A DNA stretch of 63,752 nucleotides, the filler included, from Pelomyxa schiedti (taxonomy: Eukaryota > Protista > Evosea): assembly GCA_020536535.1 (NCBI GenBank). It is 7 parts of 7 records of this genome, joined end to end, with 100 filler letters (N's around TTAATTAATTAA, not from the genome) between each part and the next. Parts side by side here need not be neighbours in the genome. Positions count along the whole stretch, not along the records: positions 38,820 to 52,267 come from JAHLWZ010001194.1; 6 more parts are not named here. One strand, 5' to 3'. The notes beneath the pieces are model-generated. The model made no database searches and was not told where the DNA came from. It saw only the letters and a program-made list of their open reading frames with translations. A program made the position numbers and the translations under genes. Every line of letters begins with the position of its first letter. Within the stretch, counting starts at the first letter, position 1. This document shows positions 38,820-52,267 of the stretch, piece by piece.

Positions 38820-39172
38820 TCAAGGTGAATGACAACAACTTGCTCGCGATGATGATGCACCAGAAGAGAGTTGGTTGCACTGAGTGGCTCATCAACCAGT
38901 TCCATGTCAAGTTGAACGAGATAACCAGACTGGCAGCCAATCACAAAATTACCTCTGTTTCAGTGGGCATGTGGAAGATGCTGATGCGTGTGTTCCCTGA
39001 AATGACAGCCTCTTTTGTGAGGGACCACTTCATGGAATGGGTGTTGGTCTCTCCACTTCACACATCTGTCACAATGAAAACCGTTGGGCTCACAAAGGCT
39101 GACGTTGACTGGTACATCAACAACAAGCCCAGCGAAAATTCAAGTGATACAAGGGGCAGCAGTGATGAATGA
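38820..39172 (+). CDS. 3' end of ankyrin-like family protein
   Basis: EWLINQFH...WKMLMRVFPEMTASFVR...SP...GLTK matches the C-terminus of 24739..27147. Confidence 0.65.
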
Positions 39173-39448
39173 AAAGAGACAGTCGCTTGGTTTTTCGGCC
39201 TGATTCATTTCCATCATCGATCACATGCACAAGCGGGTCGGGGCCACGTGTTGGGCCCTACAAGTGGTTCGATGCTGTGTTTAATGGCAACGCTCATGTG
39301 CTTTGACACATGGGTCAAAATTGACTGTGAGTCCTCTTTGTAACTAAAACTATGTTTTATTTACAAATCAACATACAGGAAGAACCTTTCACGAACGATC
39401 TGGGGCTTGTTTTTTCCCAAATCTCATCTTTGCCCTTTCGCACGGAAG

Positions 39449-42400
39449 ATGGCAGCAGCAACAAACAACAGCGCACCACGTGTTGAGCCCTTTGGGTGGC
39501 TCAACACCGCTTATTCTGGCAACGTTGACAAGCTGCGGGAGATGCTGGCTCGCGACCCCGGGCTGCTCAACTCTGTCAACAACGAACGACACCGACTGGT
39601 GTGCGAACTTCACCTGGAAGTCGGGATGGCGTGGGCGGCAGAATAAAACTTTTTTTTTTTTTTTTGTTTCTTAGTAAGTTCTCATATAATATGTTTTTTT
39701 TTTTTTCGATATATACATAGAAATTAATTCTGTTTTTGGGGCGCAGACAGCGTTGCACTTCGCCACGTGGGCAGGGGAACAACAGTGCGTTGAGTTCCTG
39801 TTGTCAATGAATATCAATGTCAATTCTCAAGTTTGTTATCGTTACTTATACTAGTCACTTACGAGCTTGCATTCTCTCACTTCACAGATTGTGTGTAAAA
39901 CCTCCCTCAATTAGAAAGCACAGCGCTTTAACTCCTCCCCTCCAGGGTAAACGTGTATGTACATCCTCATAGCTCCCAACCATATTATTGTATTCATCTG
40001 ACTTGCTTCATTTTTCACTTGATTTACTCTGTCTGTGGTGTGTTTAGTATGTGAGTATCCCCCAACCCATTTTATTGGCAATTATTCATCGATTTACTGA
40101 TTTGCTTCAATTTTCTCTATCTGTGGCGTATTTAGTCTGTGTGTATCTACCAACCTGTTTTATTGCATTTCTCATCACTCCATTCTTTGTTCTGTGGCGT
40201 CTTTAGATTGTGTGTATCCCTCAACCCCTTTTATTGCCATTATTCATCAATTTCTCCATTTCATTGCTCTGCTCTGTCTGGCAGTTAGGAAGTGCATATC
40301 CACCACTTTTAATATGTTATTCATGGATTTGTCTGACTTGCTTCAAATTCTCAATTCCTTTGCTCTGCTGTGTGTTTAGTGGGTGTGTTGTTGCATTATT
40401 CATCATGAATTGAATTGACGTGGTTCAATTTTCACTCCTTGCTTTTTTGTGTGATAAACTCAGGGAGTATGTAGCCACCAACCCTTTTATTGCTTTATTT
40501 CGTGGATTTCTCTGACTTGATTCAATTTTCATTTTATCTGATTTGATCTGTCTGTGTTTATAGATTGTGTGTATCCACCAACCTTTTTCCATTTTCTCAT
40601 AAATTTCTCTTGTTCCTTTGCTTCTGTCGTGCTTGCTATGGGGTGAAACGCGTTATTCATCAATTTCTCTGTTTCTCGTTTCGGTTTGTCTCTCTCATCC
40701 TCAGGAAGTATGATTGTTTTTTCTTCTGTTCCCCACTTATAGAGCTCTTTTTTTTTTGGATCTGTTGAATCAAAGGGTGATGTGTGTCTTCTTTTCTTTC
40801 TTTGTTGTGTTTTACACAAAACACTTAATTTTCATCTCTATCCTCTCTCAGACTGCACTTCACATTGCCTGCAAAACAGGACATGTTGAAATTGGGAAAC
40901 TACTTCTCTCCTGTGTGGGGATTGACACCAACATAAAGGTTTCTTTTCCCCATAAGAGTGTGTATCGTTGATGTGTCGTGATTTACGTGCCACGTGGGTT
41001 GGGCACAGAACAAGGATGGGAAAACAGCACTCGAGTGCTCGAAAAATGATGCAGTGCGGCAGTTGTTCCCAGCCCCATTGACGTCATCATCAACAACTGT
41101 TGATTATGTTGTTGACGAGTCAGCACCACTACAACAACTGCGACATTCTCCTGCCTCAAACAGGCCACCACCCACCTCACAACATCAAAAAGAAGAGACT
41201 GCAGAACTGAAGGCCCGAATCACACAATTGGAGGAGGAAAACGGAAGGAACCTAAAAATGATTGAAGAGGTGTGCGTTGCTGCTGTTTCTGAACAGAACT
41301 GTTTTAACTCATCTTGCAGCAAGGGTTTTTAGAATCCTTTCTCTTTGTTATTAATGTTCAAACAAGAGCTGATGGTTGAAGGAAGCAAGTACAAAGAACC
41401 TGCATATGTTTTGTGCCGAAAAAGCATCCGACCAACAAAGATTTCATGATCTCCAACACTGTTTGTGCTGCCCACTCAACATACCCTTCCCCTCAACCCA
41501 CACCGCCAACATTTTAACAACTGTCAAACAGACATGAATCATGTGATGTCACATGTTGAACAAGGAGAAGGCACGTGGTGCAACATTCTCCCTGAAAACA
41601 ACAACAACAACTGCAAGCGATCCCAAATCAGGATTGCGTTTGAGGACCTTCCCTCTTTCAATGAAATTGTGTGTGGATTCTGTCCTCTTCAAATGGTGCT
41701 TTCCGCTCTGCTCTCACTGCTTCCAGGGAAACCCCCGAAGCTAACAAACACAGGTTGTGAGTTTGGAGTTGAACCATCTCAGCAAGTAATTTTCACTGTT
41801 GTTGATGAAAACAAAACAACAACTCTGAGGAACAGCTGTTGACCGATTCATACAGAACCTTGGATGGCATTCATCAACAACAAGGAAACGGCCCCAACAA
41901 CAGAGTCGTCCAATTCCAAGTGCGAATCAAATCAACTGTGTCAATCCAAGAAAAAGATCTGAAGGTTGTTTCCACACTTGGGTCTGGAGCGTATGGAACT
42001 GTTTTCAAGTGCACCTTCGTTCACAGCACTGCAACCACTTCCTCCTCCACAACATCATCAGAAACAACAACATTTGTGGCAGTGAAAGCACTTCACGAAA
42101 TCATAAGGAGTGAGTTTAATATCACCCAGTTTCAACAGGAAGCTCTGGTGAGTGAGGAGGGAGGGAGGAGTGTTCGTTTTCTCTCTGTTTGAAACAATTC
42201 ATTCAGAAACACTCACCATCACACACACAGATTTCATCAAGTTTGAGACATCCCAACATTGTGAGATGCCTTGGAACGTGCGTCACGAGCACAGGGTCAC
42301 TCTGGATTGTCTCCGAACTCATGGAATTGAGCCTCAGGCAGCTCCTTCGTCATGTTTGTTTTGTTGCTCATCTCTCAACACTCACATTCCCACAGAAAAA

Positions 42401-43257
42401 TTTGACATTCATGGAAGTTGTTGCAGTCTCTTCAGGAATTGCGAAAGGAATGACAGCACTCCACATATTTGTTTCTTGATGACCTCTCGTTTCCCTCTTT
42501 TGTTGTTGACCAAATTTTTATGTGCCATCTACTCCCATCCCATGATTAATGACGATTCAATACAGGAGGGATTTCATGCACCGGGACCTGAACAGCTACA
42601 ATGTTCTCCTGGATTCTTGTGGAATTCCAAAGATTGCTGATTTTGGTATTTTCTTATTCCTCATGTCACAACGTTGCACAGGGTCATAATTTGAATTGCA
42701 GGAGTGTCGAGAGCTCTCCTGTCCAATGGTGGAACTGGCACCGGAACCACTGTCCCACTTCGGAGTGTAACAATTGCTGGAACACCTGTTTACCTTCCGC
42801 CGCAGATGTACAGTCGTCATTATGGAATTAAAGGTTCGGAAAATTCTCCTGCCATACTGTCCTTCGCACTGCTCACCCATCTCAAGGCGACATGTGGGAT
42901 TTTGCAGTTCTGTTGGGTGAACTTCTCAGAGGCACCCCACCAGAGGCCGTGGTTCCAAAGGCTGCCACTCAGATTCATGAGTTCATCAGAGTCCAGAGAA
43001 CTCAGCTGTCACCCCCGGAAATTGCCGGTTCGTTGTTTTGCAAGTCAAAAGTCTCTCCCTTCCCAACTGTAACTCACAACCCACACAGAGGTGGACCGGC
43101 TTTGTGACGATGCCGGAGATTATCCCGTTGCGGAGTGCCTCAGCCGGAGGAATGCAATCATTGAGGCACTGCGGTTGGACCCAGAGTTGAACAACGCGCA
43201 CCCTGCGTGCGTTGGTCAGTTCTCACTCGTTGTTGAGCTTTGCCTCTCAATCCTCGG
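39449..43257 (+). pseudogene. Ankyrin - coiled coil - ubiquitin-like - TKL kinase gene, copy A (microexon array intact; downstream part frameshifted)
   Basis: Ankyrin exons TALHFATWAG and TALHIACKTG; kinase LGSGAYGTV, VAVK, HRDLNSYN, IADFG. Compared with copy B it has frameshifting deletions at ~41375 and ~41760, and no recognisable subdomain XI (RPSF) exon. Confidence 0.6.
39888..40781 (+). other. Array of 11 phase-0 microexons (copy A)
   Basis: AG|exon|GT at ATT 39888, GGTAAACGT 39946, TAT 40048, TCT 40136, ATT 40207, GAA 40289, TGG 40380, GGA 40464, ATT 40564, GAA 40705, GGTGAT 40776. Confidence 0.75.
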
Positions 43258-44176
43258 TTCGTTATTTCCACCCCGAATTCAATTAATTAATTTTAAATTC
43301 ATGGGGAACTGGAAGCCAACAACGCAATTTAAATCAATTCCCGCCTGGCCACCCTCACAACAATCACTCATCATCATAATCGACATGCACTCGGTTGCTG
43401 AATGAAACGAAAAGAGAAAACAATAGGGTCAGGGCAGAGAACATACCTAGTTGACCCAGTGGTGTTACAGTGCCATGGATTGGATATGTGTCCACCAGAG
43501 CAAAGATCGGGACAGTGCATTGTAAGGTTCCTCGGACATCACTCGTGTGTCGTCGCACCACTACAACGCGTGTTTCATCATTTGCGCACGCTCGACATCT
43601 GCATCGGGATCGGCACCGCGTAATCGAGGAGAAGAAGGAACGTACGTAGATTATAGCGCTATAAACGAGGAGAACGTGGTGGAAAGACAGAGGGAGCAAC
43701 CTCCAGGCGACGCCACGTCAAGCAGGGCACAACCACCCTGTTATTCCTCAAGAGCTGTGAGAGATCCTGGGGAGGACATCTACCCGAAAAAGGCATCACC
43801 CACAAAGTCTGACAACTTCAATGACACGTGATGTTGTGCTGTGGGTTCACTGAATACTTAGAACGAACACGTCCGTCACTCCCTGTCACAATGGGGACCA
43901 AGGTGAAGGTGTGGCGATTACCAAGAGGCTAAATCGCAACACCGGGCGTTCTGGTGACTTCTTTCTAATCTGATGGATTTCCGGGAAAACTACCCCGAAT
44001 AACTGAGGGAGATTCAGGCGACACCTAGAACTGATTCTGGTGCCTTTATAAGGCGGGAACAACACCGTTGTAGTCACTCACTAAAGTAATAAACAACTCT
44101 TGTGTTTGTTGGAGCTTGCAAGACACGAATTTTTTTTGATCTTTGGGTGGTTCTCACCGCATTGGCCGTCAACCTC

Positions 44177-47100
44177 ATGGCAGCAGCAACAACAGCAACA
44201 GCGTCACCCACGGGGGGTCCACGCGCGGGACCCACTGAGTGGTTCAGTGCCGCGTGGAGCGGCGACACCGACGCACTGCGGCGTCTGTTGGCCGGTGACC
44301 GCGGCCTGCTAAACTCCGTTAATTACGAACGACAACGAGTGGTGTGAATGCGCTGACCAAATCTTTTTTTTTTTTTTTCCCCACACGCTTCAATAATTCC
44401 GTTTTTTTGCACACATACACCACAGACAGCGTTGCATGCAGCGACGTGGGGGGGGAAACCACGGTGTGTCGAATTCCTGCTGTCAATGAATATTGATGTC
44501 AATTCACAAGTATGCCACTGGTTTGATGTGCCTCGTCACTAACCACACTTGTATCTCTCGCTTCACAAACAGATTGTGTGTGATACTACTACTACCCATC
44601 CTGATTATAGGTTTACATTCTCTTCCCTCTAACAACCGTAAATCCAGGTGGAGCCTGTATGTACTGCCACAATCTCAATCCTTTTATTGCACAATTTTTA
44701 CTCTTTGCTGCTCTCTCTCTCTATGGCGTACTTTAGCATGTGTGTAAACCCATCCTTTTATTGCGTTGTTATTCATCGACTTCTATGACTTGCTTCAATT
44801 TTCACTCTTTGCTTTGCTCTCTCTCTCCCTGTCTTTATGGCATGCTTTAGCTTGTGTGTAAACCCACCCTTTTATTGCGTTGTTATTCATCGATTTCTAT
44901 GACTTGCTTGAATTTTCACTCTTTGCTTTGCTCTCTCTCTCTGTCTCTGTGGCATGCTTTAGTATGTGTGTAAACCCACCCTTTTATTGTGTTGTTATTC
45001 ATCGATTTGTATGACTTGCTTCAATTTTCACTCTTTGCTTTGCTCTCTCTCTCTGTTTCTATGGCATGCTTTAGCTTGTGTGTAAACCCAGTTATGGCGT
45101 TGTTATTCATCGATTTCTATGACTTGCTTCAATTTTCACTCTTTGCTTTGCTCTCTCTCTCCCTGTCTTTATGGCATGCTTTAGCTTGTGTGTAAACCCA
45201 CCCTTTTATTGCGTTGTTATTCATCGATTTCTATGACTTGCTTCAATTTTCACTCTTTGCTTTGCTCTCTGTGATAAACTCAGGGAGTGTGTAAACCCAC
45301 CCTTTTATTGTGTTGTTATTCATCGATTTGTATGACTTGCTTCAATTTTCACTCTTTGCTTTGCTCTCTCTCCCTGTCTTTATGGCATGCTTTAGTTTGT
45401 GTGTAAACCCACCCTTTTATTGCTTCAATTTTCTGTGACACTTTCTTTCTTTCTTTTTGGGCTGCCATATCTCAGGGAGTAAGTAAACACACAACCTGCC
45501 AAGCTTTTTGTTTCTAACTTTTCGGGAAATTAACTGCTTTACACTACTGGCCACCAGATTGTACATGAACTCACACCTTGATTCTTTCTTTACTTAACTC
45601 TTTTTTTTTTTTTTTTCAGGAAGTATGAGCTTGTTTTTTTTTTTTTTTTTGCATTCCTCAATGTCATCTCTACTTTTCGTGGGGGTCTCTCTGTCAAATG
45701 AAAAGGGTGATGTATGTGAATGTCCTTTGTGTTTCCTTTCCTTTGTCTGTTGTTTGACACACTTAAAACTTAATTTTCATCTTTCTCTCTCTCAGACCGC
45801 ACTTCACATTGCCTCCAGAAGGGGAAATCCTGAAATTGTGAAACAACTTCTGTCTTGTGTGGGCACTGGCACTCACATCAAGGTGTGGTGTTTTTCCCTG
45901 TGTTGCTTGTTATGTGTTGTAATTTTCCTGTTGGAAAAGAACAAAGAGGGAAAAACAGCTGTTGAGTACTCCAAGAATGATGAAGTCCGGCAACTGTTCC
46001 AATCTGTGTGTTGCAAAATCCCCGCTGCCACAGCAACAAAAACAATAGCAACACAGACAGTCTCCACCACTCCCAAAATAGCACAACAACAACCCCACAA
46101 TCTTGTTGCCCAAGACTTGCTGGAGTATTCATTCTCATTGCCTCAAAACAACCCACCACCCTCCACTGCAAACAAGTCATCATTATCTTCATCACTCACC
46201 TCATCACAACCACAATCAATGCAAGCACCACAAACAGTTGGGAGACAAGGAAGAACCTCCTGGGAAATCGAGGCAAAACAGCAGAAGAGTTGAGACAAAT
46301 TCCCCCAACCCCCCTCCCTGTTCCTAAAACCAAATTCAAATGTTGTGCACTTCAAAAAGATGAGATCACAGAACTGAAGGCACAAATCACACAATTGGAG
46401 GATGAAAATTCAAAGAACCTGAAGCTTCTCCATGAAGAAAGAAAATGCAGACAAGTCGACCAAGAAAGGTTTCATGAACTGCAACGGAACTGTTTGTGCC
46501 CCCCCACTCCTCCCCTTTCCTTTTTTTTTGTTTTTCTGACACCTGTTTTGGATGGACATCAAGGGAAACAGAATTCAGAAGTGTGTGTTTGTTGTTTGTC
46601 TTGCAATAATAATAAAAAATAATCTCTTTTGACAACACATCATCTATCAAGATGGAACTGCAAAGGTTGCAAGAAAAAACCGTGTTGGACATGACTGCAA
46701 AGAACAAGGGTTTGTCAACACCTTTTCTCCTCCTCCATTTTCTCTTTCTTCTTGTTTCGAACTCAACTGATTGTGCACTCATTGGTCATCCCTTTTTTTT
46801 CCCTTTTTACAAAAGCAGAGCTCATGGAACTGGAGGCACACATCACAACATTGGAGGAAGAAAGTACAAAGAACCTGAAGATCTTTTGTGACGAAAGAGC
46901 ACTTGAACAACAAAGATTTCGTGATCTCCAACACTGTTTGTGTTCAGTCAATACACCCCCTTTCTCAACCACACACACGATACACACACACGCGATATAT
47001 ACACCATCAATCTAACTGTAAAGCCAGACACCACTCACGTGATGTCACATGTTGAGCAAGGAGAAGGGATGTGGTGCAACATTCTCCCTGAAAATAGCAA

Positions 47101-49277
47101 CGTAAACACCAACAGCAACAACTGCAAGCAATCACAAGTCAGGATTGCGTTTGAGGATCTTCCCTCTTTCGAAGAAATTGTGTGTGGCTCCTGTTCTCTT
47201 CAAATGGTGCTCTTTCCCCTCCCTTGAATCGAATTCCCCTCTCTTTTTCCTTGAAACAAACCAAACGAACAAACGCAGGTTGTGAAACTTATCATCTCCA
47301 GGAAGTTTGGGGTTGAACCAACTCAACAAGTCATTTTCATTGTTGGTTCAGATGAACGCTCGGAGGAGGTGTTGACTGATCCATTCAGAACCTTGGAAGA
47401 AATTCAACAACAACGACAACAAGGCAACAGCGTCAACAGCATCAGCACAAACGGAGTTGTTGTGTCAATACAAGTGCGAATCAAATCAAGCATGACAATA
47501 CAAGAGAAAGACTTGAAAGTTGTTTCCACACTTGGATCTGGATCGTATGGAACTGTTTTCAAGTGCTCCTTCCTCCACAACAACACTGCAGCAGCAACGT
47601 CTTCCTCCTCCTCCACAACATCATCAGAAACAACAACATTTGTGGCAGTAAAAGCACTTCACGAAATAATAAGGAGTGAATTTAACATCAACCAATTTCA
47701 GCAGGAAGCTCTGGTGAGCGACTTTCGTTTTCTCTGTCACTGATCTTGAAATGCACACAATTCATTCATTGAAACTCACCATCACACACACAGATTTCAT
47801 CGAGGTTGAGACATCCCAACATTGTGAGATGCCTTGGAACGTGCGTCACGAGCACAGGGTCACTCTGGATCGTCTCCGAACTCATGGAATTGAGCCTCAG
47901 GCAGCTCCTTCATCATGTTTGTTGGGCTCACACTCAATTGGCAAAATATAAATATCGCTATTTACTTTGTTGGGCTCACACACACTTCACAGAAAAAGTT
48001 GACATTCACAGAAGTTGTTGCAGTCTCTTCAGGGATTGCAAAAGGAATGACAGCTCTCCACATGTTTGTTTGTTTCCTTCTTTCTTGATGTTCCTCTCGG
48101 TTCCCTCTTTTTCTTTGTTGTTGACCAGATTTTTTTTATGTGCCATCTTCTCCCATCCCATGATTGATGAACGATTCAACACAGGAGGAATTTCATGCAC
48201 CGGGACCTGAGCAGCAACAATGTTCTCTTGGATTCTTGCGGAATTCCAAAGATTGCTGATTTTGGTATTTTCTTATTTTTATTCCTCAACAATGTTTCAC
48301 GGTGCCATCATAATTTAATAACTTGTGTGTGAATTGAAGGAGTGTCGAGAGCTCTCCCAAGCAATGGTGCTGCCACTGCACTTCGGACTTTCACGAATGG
48401 GGCTGGAACACCAGTTTACCTGTCACCGCAGATGCGCACTCGTCACTACGGAATTAAAGGTTCGGAAAATTGAATTGTTCAAACCATACCAACCACCCTT
48501 AAACACTGATCATCCACCATCTCAAGGTGACATGTGGGAGTTTGCAGTTTTGTTGAGTGAACTTCTCAGAGGCTCCACACCGGAAGCCATTGTTCCAAAG
48601 GCTGCCACTCAGATTCATGAGTTCATTCGAGTCCAGAAAACTCAGCTGGCACCCCCGGAAATTGCCGGTTCGTTGTTGTGCAAAAGTCTCTCCCTTCTCA
48701 ACTGTAACTCACAACCACACACCCTCACAGAGGTGAACCGGCTTTGCACTGATGCTGGGGATTATCCCGTTGTGGAGTGCCTCATCCGGAGGAATGCAAT
48801 CATTGAGGCACTGCGGTTGGACCCAGAGTTGAACAACACGCACCCTACGTGCGTTGGCCAGTTCTCACTTGTTGTTGAGTCTTGCCTCTCAATCCTTGGT
48901 TCGTTATTTCCCCCCTCCACCACCGCTCCATTTTAAATAACAACTGCGTAAAATGGACAAGAATATACAAGTGGGTCTATCGAAATGGCAGTTAAACTTA
49001 AGTTAATATAATAATATGCCTTCCACCCGACTCACCAACACACACACGCACAGAGATCAACCGGCCATCGTTTCCGGTGATTGAGAGAATGCTGATGACA
49101 TGTGCCGAGATCGTGTTCGCCAATTCTCGCAACAACCCCACCGCAACAACAACCGCCACCACCAACGCTCCCATAATCGACAACCGCGACGTGGCCGCGC
49201 ACATCACCACGTGCCTCGCAAACATGGCCGCATCGTTCCCTGGCCGCAGCAACAACAACCAAACAACATCTTCGTAA
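44177..49277 (+). CDS. Ankyrin - coiled coil - ubiquitin-like - TKL kinase gene, copy B (apparently intact)
   Basis: Ankyrin exons (TALHAATWGG, TALHIASRRG, NKEGKTAVEY), repeated coiled-coil exons, Ub-like VKLIISRKFGVEPTQQVIF...LTDPFRTL, kinase LGSGSYGTV/VAVK/HPNIV/HRDLSSNN/IADFG/GTPVYLSPQ/DMWEF, and terminal exon EINRPSFPVIE. Confidence 0.8.
44573..45711 (+). other. Array of 13 phase-0 microexons (copy B)
   Basis: AG|exon|GT at ATT 44573, GTGGAGCCT 44648, CAT 44737, CTT 44851, TAT 44963, CTT 45075, CTT 45185, GGA 45284, TTT 45396, GGA 45476, ATT 45558, GAA 45620, GGTGAT 45706. Confidence 0.8.
44690..45430 (+). repeat. Tandem ~100-114 bp repeat (about 7 units); each unit is one intron plus one 3-nt exon
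   Basis: Unit: gtgtgtaaacccacccttttattgcgttgttattcatcgatttctatgacttgcttcaattttcactctttgctttgctctc...ggcatgctttag-NNN. Confidence 0.9.
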
Positions 49278-49499
49278 TGATGATGATCAACTCTCACAAC
49301 ACCACACACAAATACACACATTCACAAGTGGTGCATTTCCAATTGGTATTGTAGTGGCTGTTACATCCACACAAGCAAGCAACAGCATTTGTGACAGCTG
49401 TCCCCATCACTTCCAAACTCTTTCCTGGAAAGATCGTGTTCTGGGTCGCCACCACCAACAGCGACACCACGGCCACCATCGCCATCACAGCAACCGAAA

Positions 49500-50904
49500 T
49501 GGGAGGGCGGAGGAGGAGGAGTATGGCCAAGCCTCGAGGAGGGCCGAGGTAGGGGGAAGTTCTCGGGTGGGCCCGTGTTGTGCGGGACAGCGTGGTTCCT
49601 TGCTGCTTCGGTGGGTGGCACGGCGCAGGGGCGTGGGGGTCGTGCCCCCAGGAGAGACCCCCACATCCTCCTCCATGCTGGGACAAATGTGCGAGGGGGT
49701 TGGGGCGGGGGCCGACGGACCGGGCGGGGAGCGACCTGCGGCGGGGGGGTGCGGGGGGTTCGGTGCTGAGGGAGTACCACATGACTCCGGACGACGCGGA
49801 CGTGAGGCTGGGCACGTGATGGTGGCGCGACTTGCTGTCCATCGCCGAGGCTCTGTTCCCTCTGTGTGTGTATGTGTGCGTGCGTTTCCTTTTGCCGTGC
49901 GTGTGGTGCGTGCGTGCCTTGGTTATGGGATGGGATCCTATTTGTGGAGATGTTGCGACGTGGCTGAAACTTTGCATGATTGATGGTGTTGTTGGGAACT
50001 GACCATGTGAATTAGGATTTCACTTGTTGCACGAGATGTTGTTGATGACTTGGGAAGAAAGATCGCCCTTTGTGCTTGTGCACAGGCGGGAACACTCAAA
50101 GTGGCAAAGTGGATTCTCAAGCACCACGCGGAATGAGATGATTGCGTGGAGAGCTCCTTTCTTCGAGGACACGGTTCATTCCTCTCTTTTCCTCAGTTGC
50201 ACATTCGGACACCTCGATTATTCTCAGTGGTTGGTGGCTGAATGCGGAGCAACAAGAGATGGTTTTGAGGGACAACAACGTTGTCCTCCAACAGTGTTAT
50301 GCTCATAGCAAGTTGAGGTCACTGAAATTTTTGATTGAGAATTACGGAATAACATCAGATGACATTCGGAGGGAGAATTGCATGTGTTTCCGGTACTTTT
50401 CCACGTCGTTATTATTTCCTCACTTCATTTCCGAAAGGCTGGCATGCAGAAAAGGCCGCCGCGAGATTTTGGAATATCTGATTTCCACTCTTTTGGTCTG
50501 ACCAGGATGTCTTACATCACACAAAACACTTACTGCCGAATAATAACTCACAATCTAAGGAACGCACTCCGTAATGAAGTGGAAGCCGTGGAATATCTGA
50601 TCACAACTTATGGAATCACAAAGGGTGAATTCATTGCGTGCAAATGCTTGGGGTATTTACCTTGTTCCGGCATTCAAATTCGTACTGACCCGCTCCCACA
50701 GTTCCGTTATGGGTCAGAATGCTTCAGTATCTCCAGGGATTGTTTTCATTCACCAAAGAGGAGATACTAGCTGATGAATTCACCCTCTTACAGTATAAGC
50801 CCTGCGTTTTAAAAATATTCATTCCACACAGGTGCGCCTGCGAAATTGAAAGCACCAACATGTCTGCGCACCTGCTGGACTCACAAAGGAGGATTTTGAT
50901 GTGA
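49500..50904 (+). pseudogene. Degenerate ankyrin-like family gene
   Basis: Fragments LSCTFGHLDYSQWL, LKFLIENYGITSDDIRRENC and LACRKGRREILEYL lie in shifting frames with stops. Confidence 0.5.
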
Positions 50905-51262
50905 CCGCATTTTTTGTCTATGTGCAAAAGGGTGGTATCCCTTGTCTTGGTCTTCCACAACCTGATAAATGTATGATTATGTGAGAGATGCTCCTTTCTT
51001 TTTCAGAAAGTTCAGTTTTTTTTTTTGTTTTCCTACATTGTGCCCAGGTTGACTGTGAACAGTGAAACAAATGCAAAAAAGTTGTTACAATGCAACTAAT
51101 GGGATTGTTGTTGTTGAGCCATCTGAGCTTGGAGGAACTGGGCACGGTTCTCCAGAACTCTTATTTTCCTTGTTGTTGATAATATTAGTCTGTTTGTTGG
51201 GTGTATTTATTGGATGGTGAGTGTGATTGGCGTTTTGGTTTTAGGTTTTCGTTTTTTCGGCG

Positions 51263-52267
51263 TTACCTGTCTTTGGCGGCAACGTGATTTGAAAGGTAGT
51301 CCCTGATAAATAGCCTCAGCTTTGCGTTCCTCTTCTTGAGCTTATCTATCTTCAGGTTGGCTTCAGCCAATTGGCCGGCAAGGTCAATGCTATCCAGAAT
51401 CTGATTGTGGCCGTCCAACTGTGCCGGTTCTTGTTGGAATGATGATGAGGCTGTGTGCGTTGTTGACTCCGGTGTCACTTCTTCCCTTGGGCTTGTTGTT
51501 GATTTTGCGGATTTTTTTGTTGTTGATTTTGCCGTGATTGGTGAGTGGGAGTCGAGTGCGGGGTCTTCCTCTTTTGTGCACATAAGCTCATCTGTTGTGG
51601 ATGCTTGTTGATTGGTGTTGCGGTACTTTACATTAGAATTTGGTTGGTCTTTGTGCCGGGTGTTCAGGGGTGATTTGGCTGTTTTGCTTGTGTGTGGTGT
51701 TGATACTTTGGTTGATTTTGAGCCGGTTAATGCCGGTTGGGTGTTTGCTTTTTTTGAGTGCGTGTGGGATGTGCGTCCCTTGTGCTGCGGTGATTGCGGT
51801 TGAGAGGTGTTTGGTTCTGATTCCTGAAGAGGATGTGACTCTTGGTCGTATGCATTATTATTGGCCCTGTCTTGCGGCAGCTCTTGTATTTGCGGAGATG
51901 GAAGCAGTTGGTGAGGCTGGTCAGGTGAAAAGGTTGTTGAGAAGGGAGGTTGTTGGGATGGTTTTACATTGCCAAGTTGGTCCGGCAGTTGGACACCTGT
52001 GTGGATTGGGTTGGTTGGTCCAATAAGATTAAGTTATGTGATACCAGAGAATCTCATTTGGTCTGTTGTATTGGAAAACATTGTGTTGCCAAGACTTGGC
52101 GGTGGTGAACTTTGCCCAATCCTGCAACTCGTTAGGTGCTTGCTTGTTGTTCATTTGCGAGCAAACACACATGGGTGGACAGACGGACAGAAATGTAGAG
52201 ATGCTTGTCAGAACTGTCAACTGCTGAGAAAAGGCATCCACCTCAACTTGGGCGGAATTTAGTGCCT
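51263..52267 (-). CDS. Partial low-complexity protein with C-terminal coiled coil
   Basis: T/S/Q/N-rich minus-strand reading ends LAGQLAEANLKIDKLKKRNAKLRLFIRDYL. 5' end lost at the linker; exon structure unresolved. Confidence 0.35.

Follow-up and report, generated by a model that had tools for sequence, protein, structure and literature searches.

Candidate arrays of single-codon microexons at the hairpin loop between two ankyrin repeats in Pelomyxa schiedti

Genes and arrays at the locus

The DNA analysed here (the window, 63,752 nucleotides (nt) long with its filler) comes from the assembly GCA_020536535.1 of Pelomyxa schiedti, an anaerobic archamoeba, and its positions 38820-52267 are the whole of the 13,448-base-pair (bp) contig JAHLWZ010001194.1. 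Two paralogous genes, called A and B below, lie on this contig. In each of them, two exons encoding ankyrin repeats are separated by a chain of very short units, most of them a single codon, with AG in front of each unit and GT behind it. The units are called microexons here and the segments between them mini-introns. Judging from the sequence comparisons described below, we consider it quite probable that the units are real microexons, and we infer that the arrays are actually spliced and translated. The features of gene A around its array are as follows, with positions counted along the window.

39449-39598, + strand: gene A exon 1, 50 codons, beginning MAAAT (read from the sequence; copies B, C and E have a homologous exon 1)
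39747-39830, + strand: gene A exon 2, ankyrin repeat residues T to Q (28 amino acids (aa)), ending NINVNSQ (Pfam PF00023 Ank)
39831-40851, + strand: array A, 1021 nt, 12 mini-introns of 55-138 nt with 11 candidate microexons between them
39888-39890, + strand: microexon 1, ATT (Ile), identical in all five arrays
39946-39954, + strand: microexon 2, 9 nt, GGTAAACGT (GKR); 9 nt long in A, B, C and E, with a different sequence in each
40048-40050, + strand: microexon 3, TAT (Tyr), variable core
40136-40138, + strand: microexon 4, TCT (Ser), variable core
40207-40209, + strand: microexon 5, ATT (Ile), variable core
40289-40291, + strand: microexon 6, GAA (Glu), variable core
40380-40382, + strand: microexon 7, TGG (Trp), variable core
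40464-40466, + strand: microexon 8, GGA (Gly), scaffold; its junction type 'aaactcag GGA gt' is common to A, B, C and E
40564-40566, + strand: microexon 9, ATT (Ile), scaffold
40567-40704, + strand: longest mini-intron of array A, 138 nt (unit alignment, by eye)
40705-40707, + strand: microexon 10, GAA (Glu), scaffold
40776-40781, + strand: microexon 11, GGTGAT (Gly-Asp), giving the ankyrin-consensus 'G x' ahead of T-x-L-H
40852-40938, + strand: gene A exon 3' of the array, ankyrin repeat TALHIAC...NIK, 29 aa (Pfam PF00023)

Nine of the eleven microexons of array A are 3 nt long, one is 6 nt and one is 9 nt, and with the neighbouring exons they give the conceptual reading NSQ-I-GKR-Y-S-I-E-W-G-I-E-GD-TALH. 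Both the eleven units and this peptide had been proposed in an initial annotation of the window; every unit was found in its place, with AG before it and GT after it, and the peptide was reproduced. The longest mini-intron looks like two units fused through the deletion of one whole junction. Array A contains the motif YAG-NNN-GTRNG 8 times in its 1021 nt, compared with 0.07 expected from a first-order Markov simulation. We account for this excess by the fact that the region is a tandem repeat of an 85-112-nt unit, and neither the excess nor the repetition is by itself evidence of use or of selection. A check of the array on both strands gave no open reading frame of note, and Rfam scans of contig JAHLWZ010001194.1 outside positions 45585-45628 gave no Rfam family.

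The corresponding features of gene B are given below.

44426-44509, + strand: gene B exon 2 (ankyrin repeat), paralog of 39747-39830
44510-45795, + strand: array B, 13 candidate microexons
44573, 44648 (9 nt), 44737, 44851, 44963, 45075, 45185, + strand: starts of the first microexons of array B
45284, 45396, 45476, 45558, 45620, 45706 (6 nt), + strand: starts of its remaining microexons
45796-45882, + strand: gene B exon 3' of the array (ankyrin repeat)

The loop read from array B is I-VEP-H-L-Y-L-L-G-F-G-I-E-GD. The initial annotation had placed an array here with boundaries one base off and had described the introns of A and B as diverged; the array is present, at 44510-45795, and the mini-introns are in fact one homologous family, 62-72% identical between the two copies. 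Tandem Repeats Finder reports the core of array B as a 112-bp tandem repeat with 6.5 copies, and its units within 44740-45187 are near-identical (95-100% alike), two of the junction windows being identical across 113 nt. Such units are either very recent duplications or the result of a wrong copy number in the assembly.

Through its kinase half, gene A could be placed in a large family of P. schiedti, and scans of the contigs of family members revealed three more arrays (C, D and E), all on contig JAHLWZ010000530.1.

L006 13771-15605: array C, 19 candidate microexons, I-GAP-D-D-G-H-Y-S-Y-G-I-Y-I-G-I-G-T-E-GD
L007 13383-14533: array D, decayed, a near-copy of C
L007 15711-16712: array E, 11 candidate microexons, I-GVP-G-Y-Y-G-N-G-I-E-GD

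The common plan starts with exon 1, an ankyrin exon of 28 codons, ATT, a 9-nt exon and a variable run of triplets, and continues with GGA, ATT or ACT, GAA, GGTGAT and the next ankyrin exon. The scaffold recognized in the initial annotation (a first Ile, a 9-nt second exon and a terminal G-I/T-E-GD) therefore recurs in arrays C and E. The encoded loop is 14 residues long in A and in E, 16 in B and 22 in C, and the longest runs contain up to 17 consecutive single-codon exons. Gly, Tyr and Ile predominate among the core residues of these four arrays, while Asp, His and Ser are present in smaller numbers. At their C-terminal ends, genes C, D and E encode SAM and U-box domains in place of the kinase, so the N-terminal ankyrin-plus-array module has been reassorted among different types of gene.

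Arrays C, D and E form a tandem cluster interleaved with ankyrin-kinase genes (L007 4541-18061). In array C, Gly appears every few residues (DDG-HYSYG-IYIG-IG), and this spacing hints at higher-order unit blocks that end in the distinct 'aaactcag GGA' junction type.

Splice signals and codons across the arrays

The splice signals were compared over 45 single-codon junctions from arrays A, B, C and E, with the GAA of array B left out. AG and GT are both present at 45/45 junctions (180/180 splice-dinucleotide bases), position -3 is a pyrimidine and position +3 a purine (G or A) at 45/45, and position +5 is G at 43/45. Entropy is zero in the AG and GT columns; in the three columns of the exon it is 1.9, 1.8 and 1.2 bits, which places them among the most variable of the 43 columns compared. 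The 6-nt and 9-nt exons are likewise flanked by a YAG acceptor and a GT donor. An nhmmer profile of the junction flanks recovered every unit boundary in A, B, C and E, and in a scan of these arrays outside 45585-45628 no damaged AG or GT and no spacing other than 3 was found. The lengths of all 54 microexons of the four arrays are multiples of 3.

Arrays A and E are collinear, with 11 microexons each, and their overall identity is 79%. When the intron sites other than the splice dinucleotides are taken as the reference, 148/643 differ between the two arrays (23%). None of the 47 splice-dinucleotide sites differs (Fisher p = 7.5e-6 against the intron rate) and none of the 18 sites in the scaffold microexons does (p = 0.009 against the same rate), whereas 14 of the 24 sites in the variable core, which consists of the 9-nt exon and five triplets, are different (58%; binomial p = 2e-4). 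The core therefore diverges faster than the introns, and the contrast between the middle parts of A and B (YSIEW and HLYLLGF) to which the initial annotation drew attention is borne out. The same annotation had held that its units would be refuted if AG and GT were no more conserved than the neighbouring intron bases; in this comparison, run on the five arrays, the signals were intact at 45/45 junctions and 0/47 of them differed between A and E against 23% of the intron sites. The splice signals are under purifying selection relative to the neighbouring intron. Noncoding repeat DNA should show neither frozen dinucleotides nor codons of which one part is frozen and another part is racing. Gene conversion between units was considered because one A/E pair differs in its junction type, and it could add to the core differences but not explain the invariant signals. 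A test within array B of the variability of the triplets against that of their flanks gave no significant difference (p = 0.56).

Damage to the junctions is confined to copy D, which is already dead. Copy D is 95.6% identical to C, and its flanking exons are broken: exon 1 is interrupted, half of exon 2 has been lost and the following exon carries a frameshift. Within its array, AG has become GG at one acceptor, 4 nt of a donor are deleted, and the 9-nt exon and several units are missing. For most pairs of copies, the ratio of nonsynonymous to synonymous substitution rates (dN/dS) in the flanking exons is 0.3-0.56.

The ankyrin loop and alternative explanations

In the ankyrin consensus, a repeat is 33 residues long: the stretch that starts at the T of TxLH and runs to the repeat end makes up 28 of them, and the hairpin tip (D-x-x-G-x) the other 5. 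The exons flanking array A were tested singly against PF00023, whose gathering cut-off is 21.1 bits. The exon at 39747-39830 scored 25.2 bits (E = 1.8e-5, profile positions 4-30 of 33) and that at 40852-40938 scored 30.6 bits (E = 3.6e-7, profile positions 4-31 of 33). Both begin at profile position 4, the T of T-x-L-H, and the exon lengths and profile positions agree with the 28 + 5 layout. Exon 2 provides 28 residues and the G-I-E-GD tail provides the missing 5, with a Gly falling on that of the consensus. A conserved scaffold, made of the first Ile and the terminal G-I/T-E-GD, would thus complete the repeat to its canonical 33 residues. If the array were removed as one intron, helix 2 would be joined directly to TALH and the repeat would be left without a loop.

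In sixteen aligned paralogs, a loop of 4-13 hypervariable residues ending in G-[QERK] occupies the corresponding site, and no other segment between invariant flanks varies strongly in length. Spliced mapping of two of these paralogs, P0003 and P0009, placed the loop within one continuous exon. In an AlphaFold2 model of one plain-exon paralog (predicted local distance difference test score 86, predicted template modelling score 0.81), the loop forms a long inter-repeat connection of about 24 residues between the helices at 119-126 and 151-158. From the site of the loop in the paralogs and the fit to the repeat, it follows that the arrays replace exactly, and only, the hypervariable loop of the family. 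The array-encoded loops, with 14-22 residues, are slightly above the range of the paralogs. The loop may act as a binding surface.

We propose that the stretch of array A would be a chain of 12 GT-AG mini-introns of ordinary size that belong to one tandemly repeated family. Each mini-intron would be spliced singly by intron definition, with a strong donor on the intron side (GTRYGT), a T-rich tract and YAG, and each removal would leave a single codon in the messenger RNA (mRNA). The microexons would jointly encode the whole hairpin loop between the two ankyrin repeats, including its hypervariable middle rich in Gly, Tyr and Ile. No triplet starts with GT, so stepwise removal cannot erase codons as it would at ratchet points. 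As each unit is an intron plus a multiple of three bases, the loop would gain or lose one residue at a time, with the frame kept, by unequal crossing-over or slippage between the homologous introns; duplication of such frame-neutral units would explain both the growth of the arrays and the different numbers of units in paralogs. Since all exon lengths are multiples of 3, the frame is kept whichever later acceptor a given donor is joined to. On the size of the introns, 51 annotated introns from six paralogs have a median of 68 nt, and 48 of them are 39-133 nt long; the remaining three outliers are 432-821 nt long, and two of these are in a doubtful model. The mini-introns are 55-156 nt long across the arrays, while the arrays taken as single introns would be 1.0-1.8 kilobases (kb) long.

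A number of observations weigh against this proposal. The array donors are GTRYGT while those of the sampled genes are mostly GTTYGT, the array acceptors are often TTTAG instead of the usual CAG, and 36% of the array junctions have a pyrimidine as the first base of the exon, compared with 0/51 for the annotated introns. The exon base ahead of the array donors is rarely G, and the purine at +3 may compensate for the absent exon-side U1 match. The triplets contain no stop codon (0 among 45, with 2.1 expected), an avoidance that is statistically weak (P = 0.11). To our knowledge, repeated splicing in a row of introns across 3-nt exons has not been demonstrated. The near-identical units of array B could have been miscounted by the assembler, the assembly being a single-cell one from short reads and Nanopore reads. 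The only RNA run among the sequencing runs that we found does not contain the locus; the two runs that do contain it are of unrecorded kind, most likely source DNA. Protein searches with the kinase exon or the gene B exon found no transcript-derived protein, and the search with the 117-aa exon of gene B gave no matches.

The public annotation, which was aided by transcripts, also models no array, and its gene models stop or start inside the arrays, either ending in the first mini-intron or beginning at an ATG within the array. For example, the 775-aa model of gene B starts at the ATG at 45661 in a mini-intron and runs on across the acceptor site of the final microexon (45661-45711), and the true N-terminal exons of gene B at 44177-44509 are unannotated. 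Arrays C, D and E are misannotated likewise. The genome was assembled from whole-genome-amplified single cells and annotated by Augustus, PASA and EVM with Smart-seq2 transcriptomes, and it is rich in introns, with 7.43 per gene, of which 98.4% are GT-AG (PMC8887013). The word 'exon' does not occur in the text of that paper.

The state of gene A is a further point against the proposal as far as array A itself is concerned. Relative to gene B, a donor GT of gene A has become AT at 42470-71, and two deletions, 23 nt near 41369 and 19 nt near 41755, break its frame. The annotation splits the gene into a 230-aa model (Pelo_16806) and a 173-aa model. In addition, dN/dS of the flanking ankyrin exons is 1.48 between A and E (dS 0.14, dN 0.21; window 39747-39830 and 40852-40905 against L007 15626-15709 and 16713-16766), compared with 0.3-0.56 in other pairs, which could be due to positive selection, to relaxed constraint in A or to a small-sample effect. 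Gene A is probably a pseudogene, as judged from its kinase half, unless these lesions are errors of the single-cell assembly. Array A may accordingly be a recent fossil, built like the other arrays but in a decaying pseudogene without a working protein. We give this about even chances, and it is compatible with the proposed microexons for the family. Against it, gene A has kept every N-terminal exon and the boundaries of all 12 mini-introns intact, and some of the lesions could be assembly errors, since the genome comes from whole-genome-amplified single cells (PMC8887013). Genes B, C and E look intact.

Two further features were seen on the contig. A degenerate partial copy of the family exon 1 at 39247-39309, about 140 nt upstream of the start codon of gene A, reads PRVGPYKWFDAVFNGNAHVL and then a stop, and looks like a remnant of a local duplication. 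Between the end of gene B and the next annotated gene, 49320-49850 is GC-rich (63% compared with about 45% elsewhere) and contains G-runs.

Another explanation, which we regard as unlikely, is that the splice sites are real and the first Ile and G-I-E-GD are used as a rule, while the core triplets are skipped or enter rare isoforms. The scaffold suffices for a canonical 33-residue repeat, its codons are the ones that do not differ between A and E (0/18) while the core is not conserved, and exons that are all multiples of 3 allow any donor to be paired in frame with later acceptors. On the other hand, the core junctions are as strictly conserved as the scaffold junctions, and the core codons change faster than the intron rate instead of at that rate, and without stop codons. 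Long loops are also normal in this family, as the contiguous paralogs with loops of 8-13 aa show.

It is less likely still that the arrays are satellites within one long intron, in which a segment with an intron end and an intron start was amplified inside a 1-kb intron, so that AG-NNN-GT was merely inherited and the triplets never reach the mRNA. The core is indeed a tandem repeat, the units of array B are as alike as those of a young satellite (95-100%), the annotation shows no microexons at the locus, and three annotated introns of the family are 432-821 nt long. However, neutral repeats would not hold 180/180 splice-dinucleotide bases amid varying columns, and similar rates would be seen over all repeat columns, not zero entropy at AG/GT beside 1.8-1.9 bits. 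Neither the 0/47 against 23% differences between A and E nor a triplet that evolves faster than its surroundings would be expected. Strong cryptic splice sites in an intron should face counter-selection, junctions decay in the dead copy D alone, and the protein would lose a hairpin loop that every contiguous paralog has kept. An origin by repeated insertion of mobile introns (introners) at 3-nt offsets, instead of tandem duplication, is very improbable: all core introns are one sequence family, as it would have them, but about 73 kb of further P. schiedti sequence contained no copy of the unit beyond the arrays, and the head-to-tail periodicity and near-identical neighbours fit tandem duplication.

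Known systems and significance

The candidate microexons of Pelomyxa can be compared with the micro-exon genes (MEGs) of schistosomes, whose exons are given as symmetric and 3-81 bp long (PMC10526429; see also PMC4350168). Both have runs of very short exons that are multiples of three, can be skipped in frame and are linked to protein variation, and MEGs differ in that microexons make up most of a small secreted protein, with introns of up to 5 kb. The Pelomyxa arrays affect only one loop of a cytosolic-type ankyrin module, 14-22 codons in about 800 aa; their exons are mostly single codons, and their introns of 55-156 nt belong to one tandem-repeat family. The comparison is architectural only, and no homology is expected. 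In this sense the arrays, as far as their sequence tells, appear to be an extreme form of micro-exon gene architecture.

Single-codon exons are known to be spliced in real mRNAs, for example in Drosophila homothorax and in human MAP4K5 and RPS24 (PMC7392893, PMC8632122, PMC12207440), and therefore a 3-nt exon is possible in principle. These animal microexons are isolated, or have at most three neighbours, and lie between long introns, whereas up to 17 follow in a row in Pelomyxa. Annotation pipelines routinely overlook exons no longer than 15 nt, as work on plants shows (PMC8831610), just as the public gene models of Pelomyxa stop and start inside the arrays, although plant microexons are ancient, conserved and scattered and the Pelomyxa units are tandemly amplified. 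Recursive splicing likewise removes a long stretch stepwise through internal acceptor-donor pairs; however, AG is directly followed by GT at a ratchet point and nothing is left, while 3, 6 or 9 nt always lie between them in Pelomyxa. With an intronic minisatellite the arrays share a tandem repeat of about 85-112 bp within a gene and a copy number that varies between paralogs, and they differ from it in having, at the boundary of the repeat, strictly conserved splice signals around a fast-evolving triplet. Our literature searches returned nothing on microexons in Archamoebae, and they turned up no description of a repeated mini-intron family with single-codon exons strung together in long runs.

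As to function, we suggest only tentatively, as something possible but doubtful, that the arrays are a device for diversifying the loop. Its length would be changed residue by residue through recombination, many in-frame loop isoforms could be formed (2^11 to 2^19 on paper), and the ankyrin-kinase and ankyrin-U-box proteins would thereby have a tunable recognition surface.

If the arrays are confirmed by complementary DNA, the practical lower limit of exon size would be reached in bulk, with up to 17 consecutive single-codon exons, and splicing by intron definition would be able to cope with neighbouring introns just 3 nt apart. The arrays would also be a clean natural case of intron-plus-codon units that evolve by tandem duplication, in which a loop is lengthened and varied without risk to the frame. 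Standard pipelines truncate or split every one of these array genes, and the proteomes of protists may hide similar structures.

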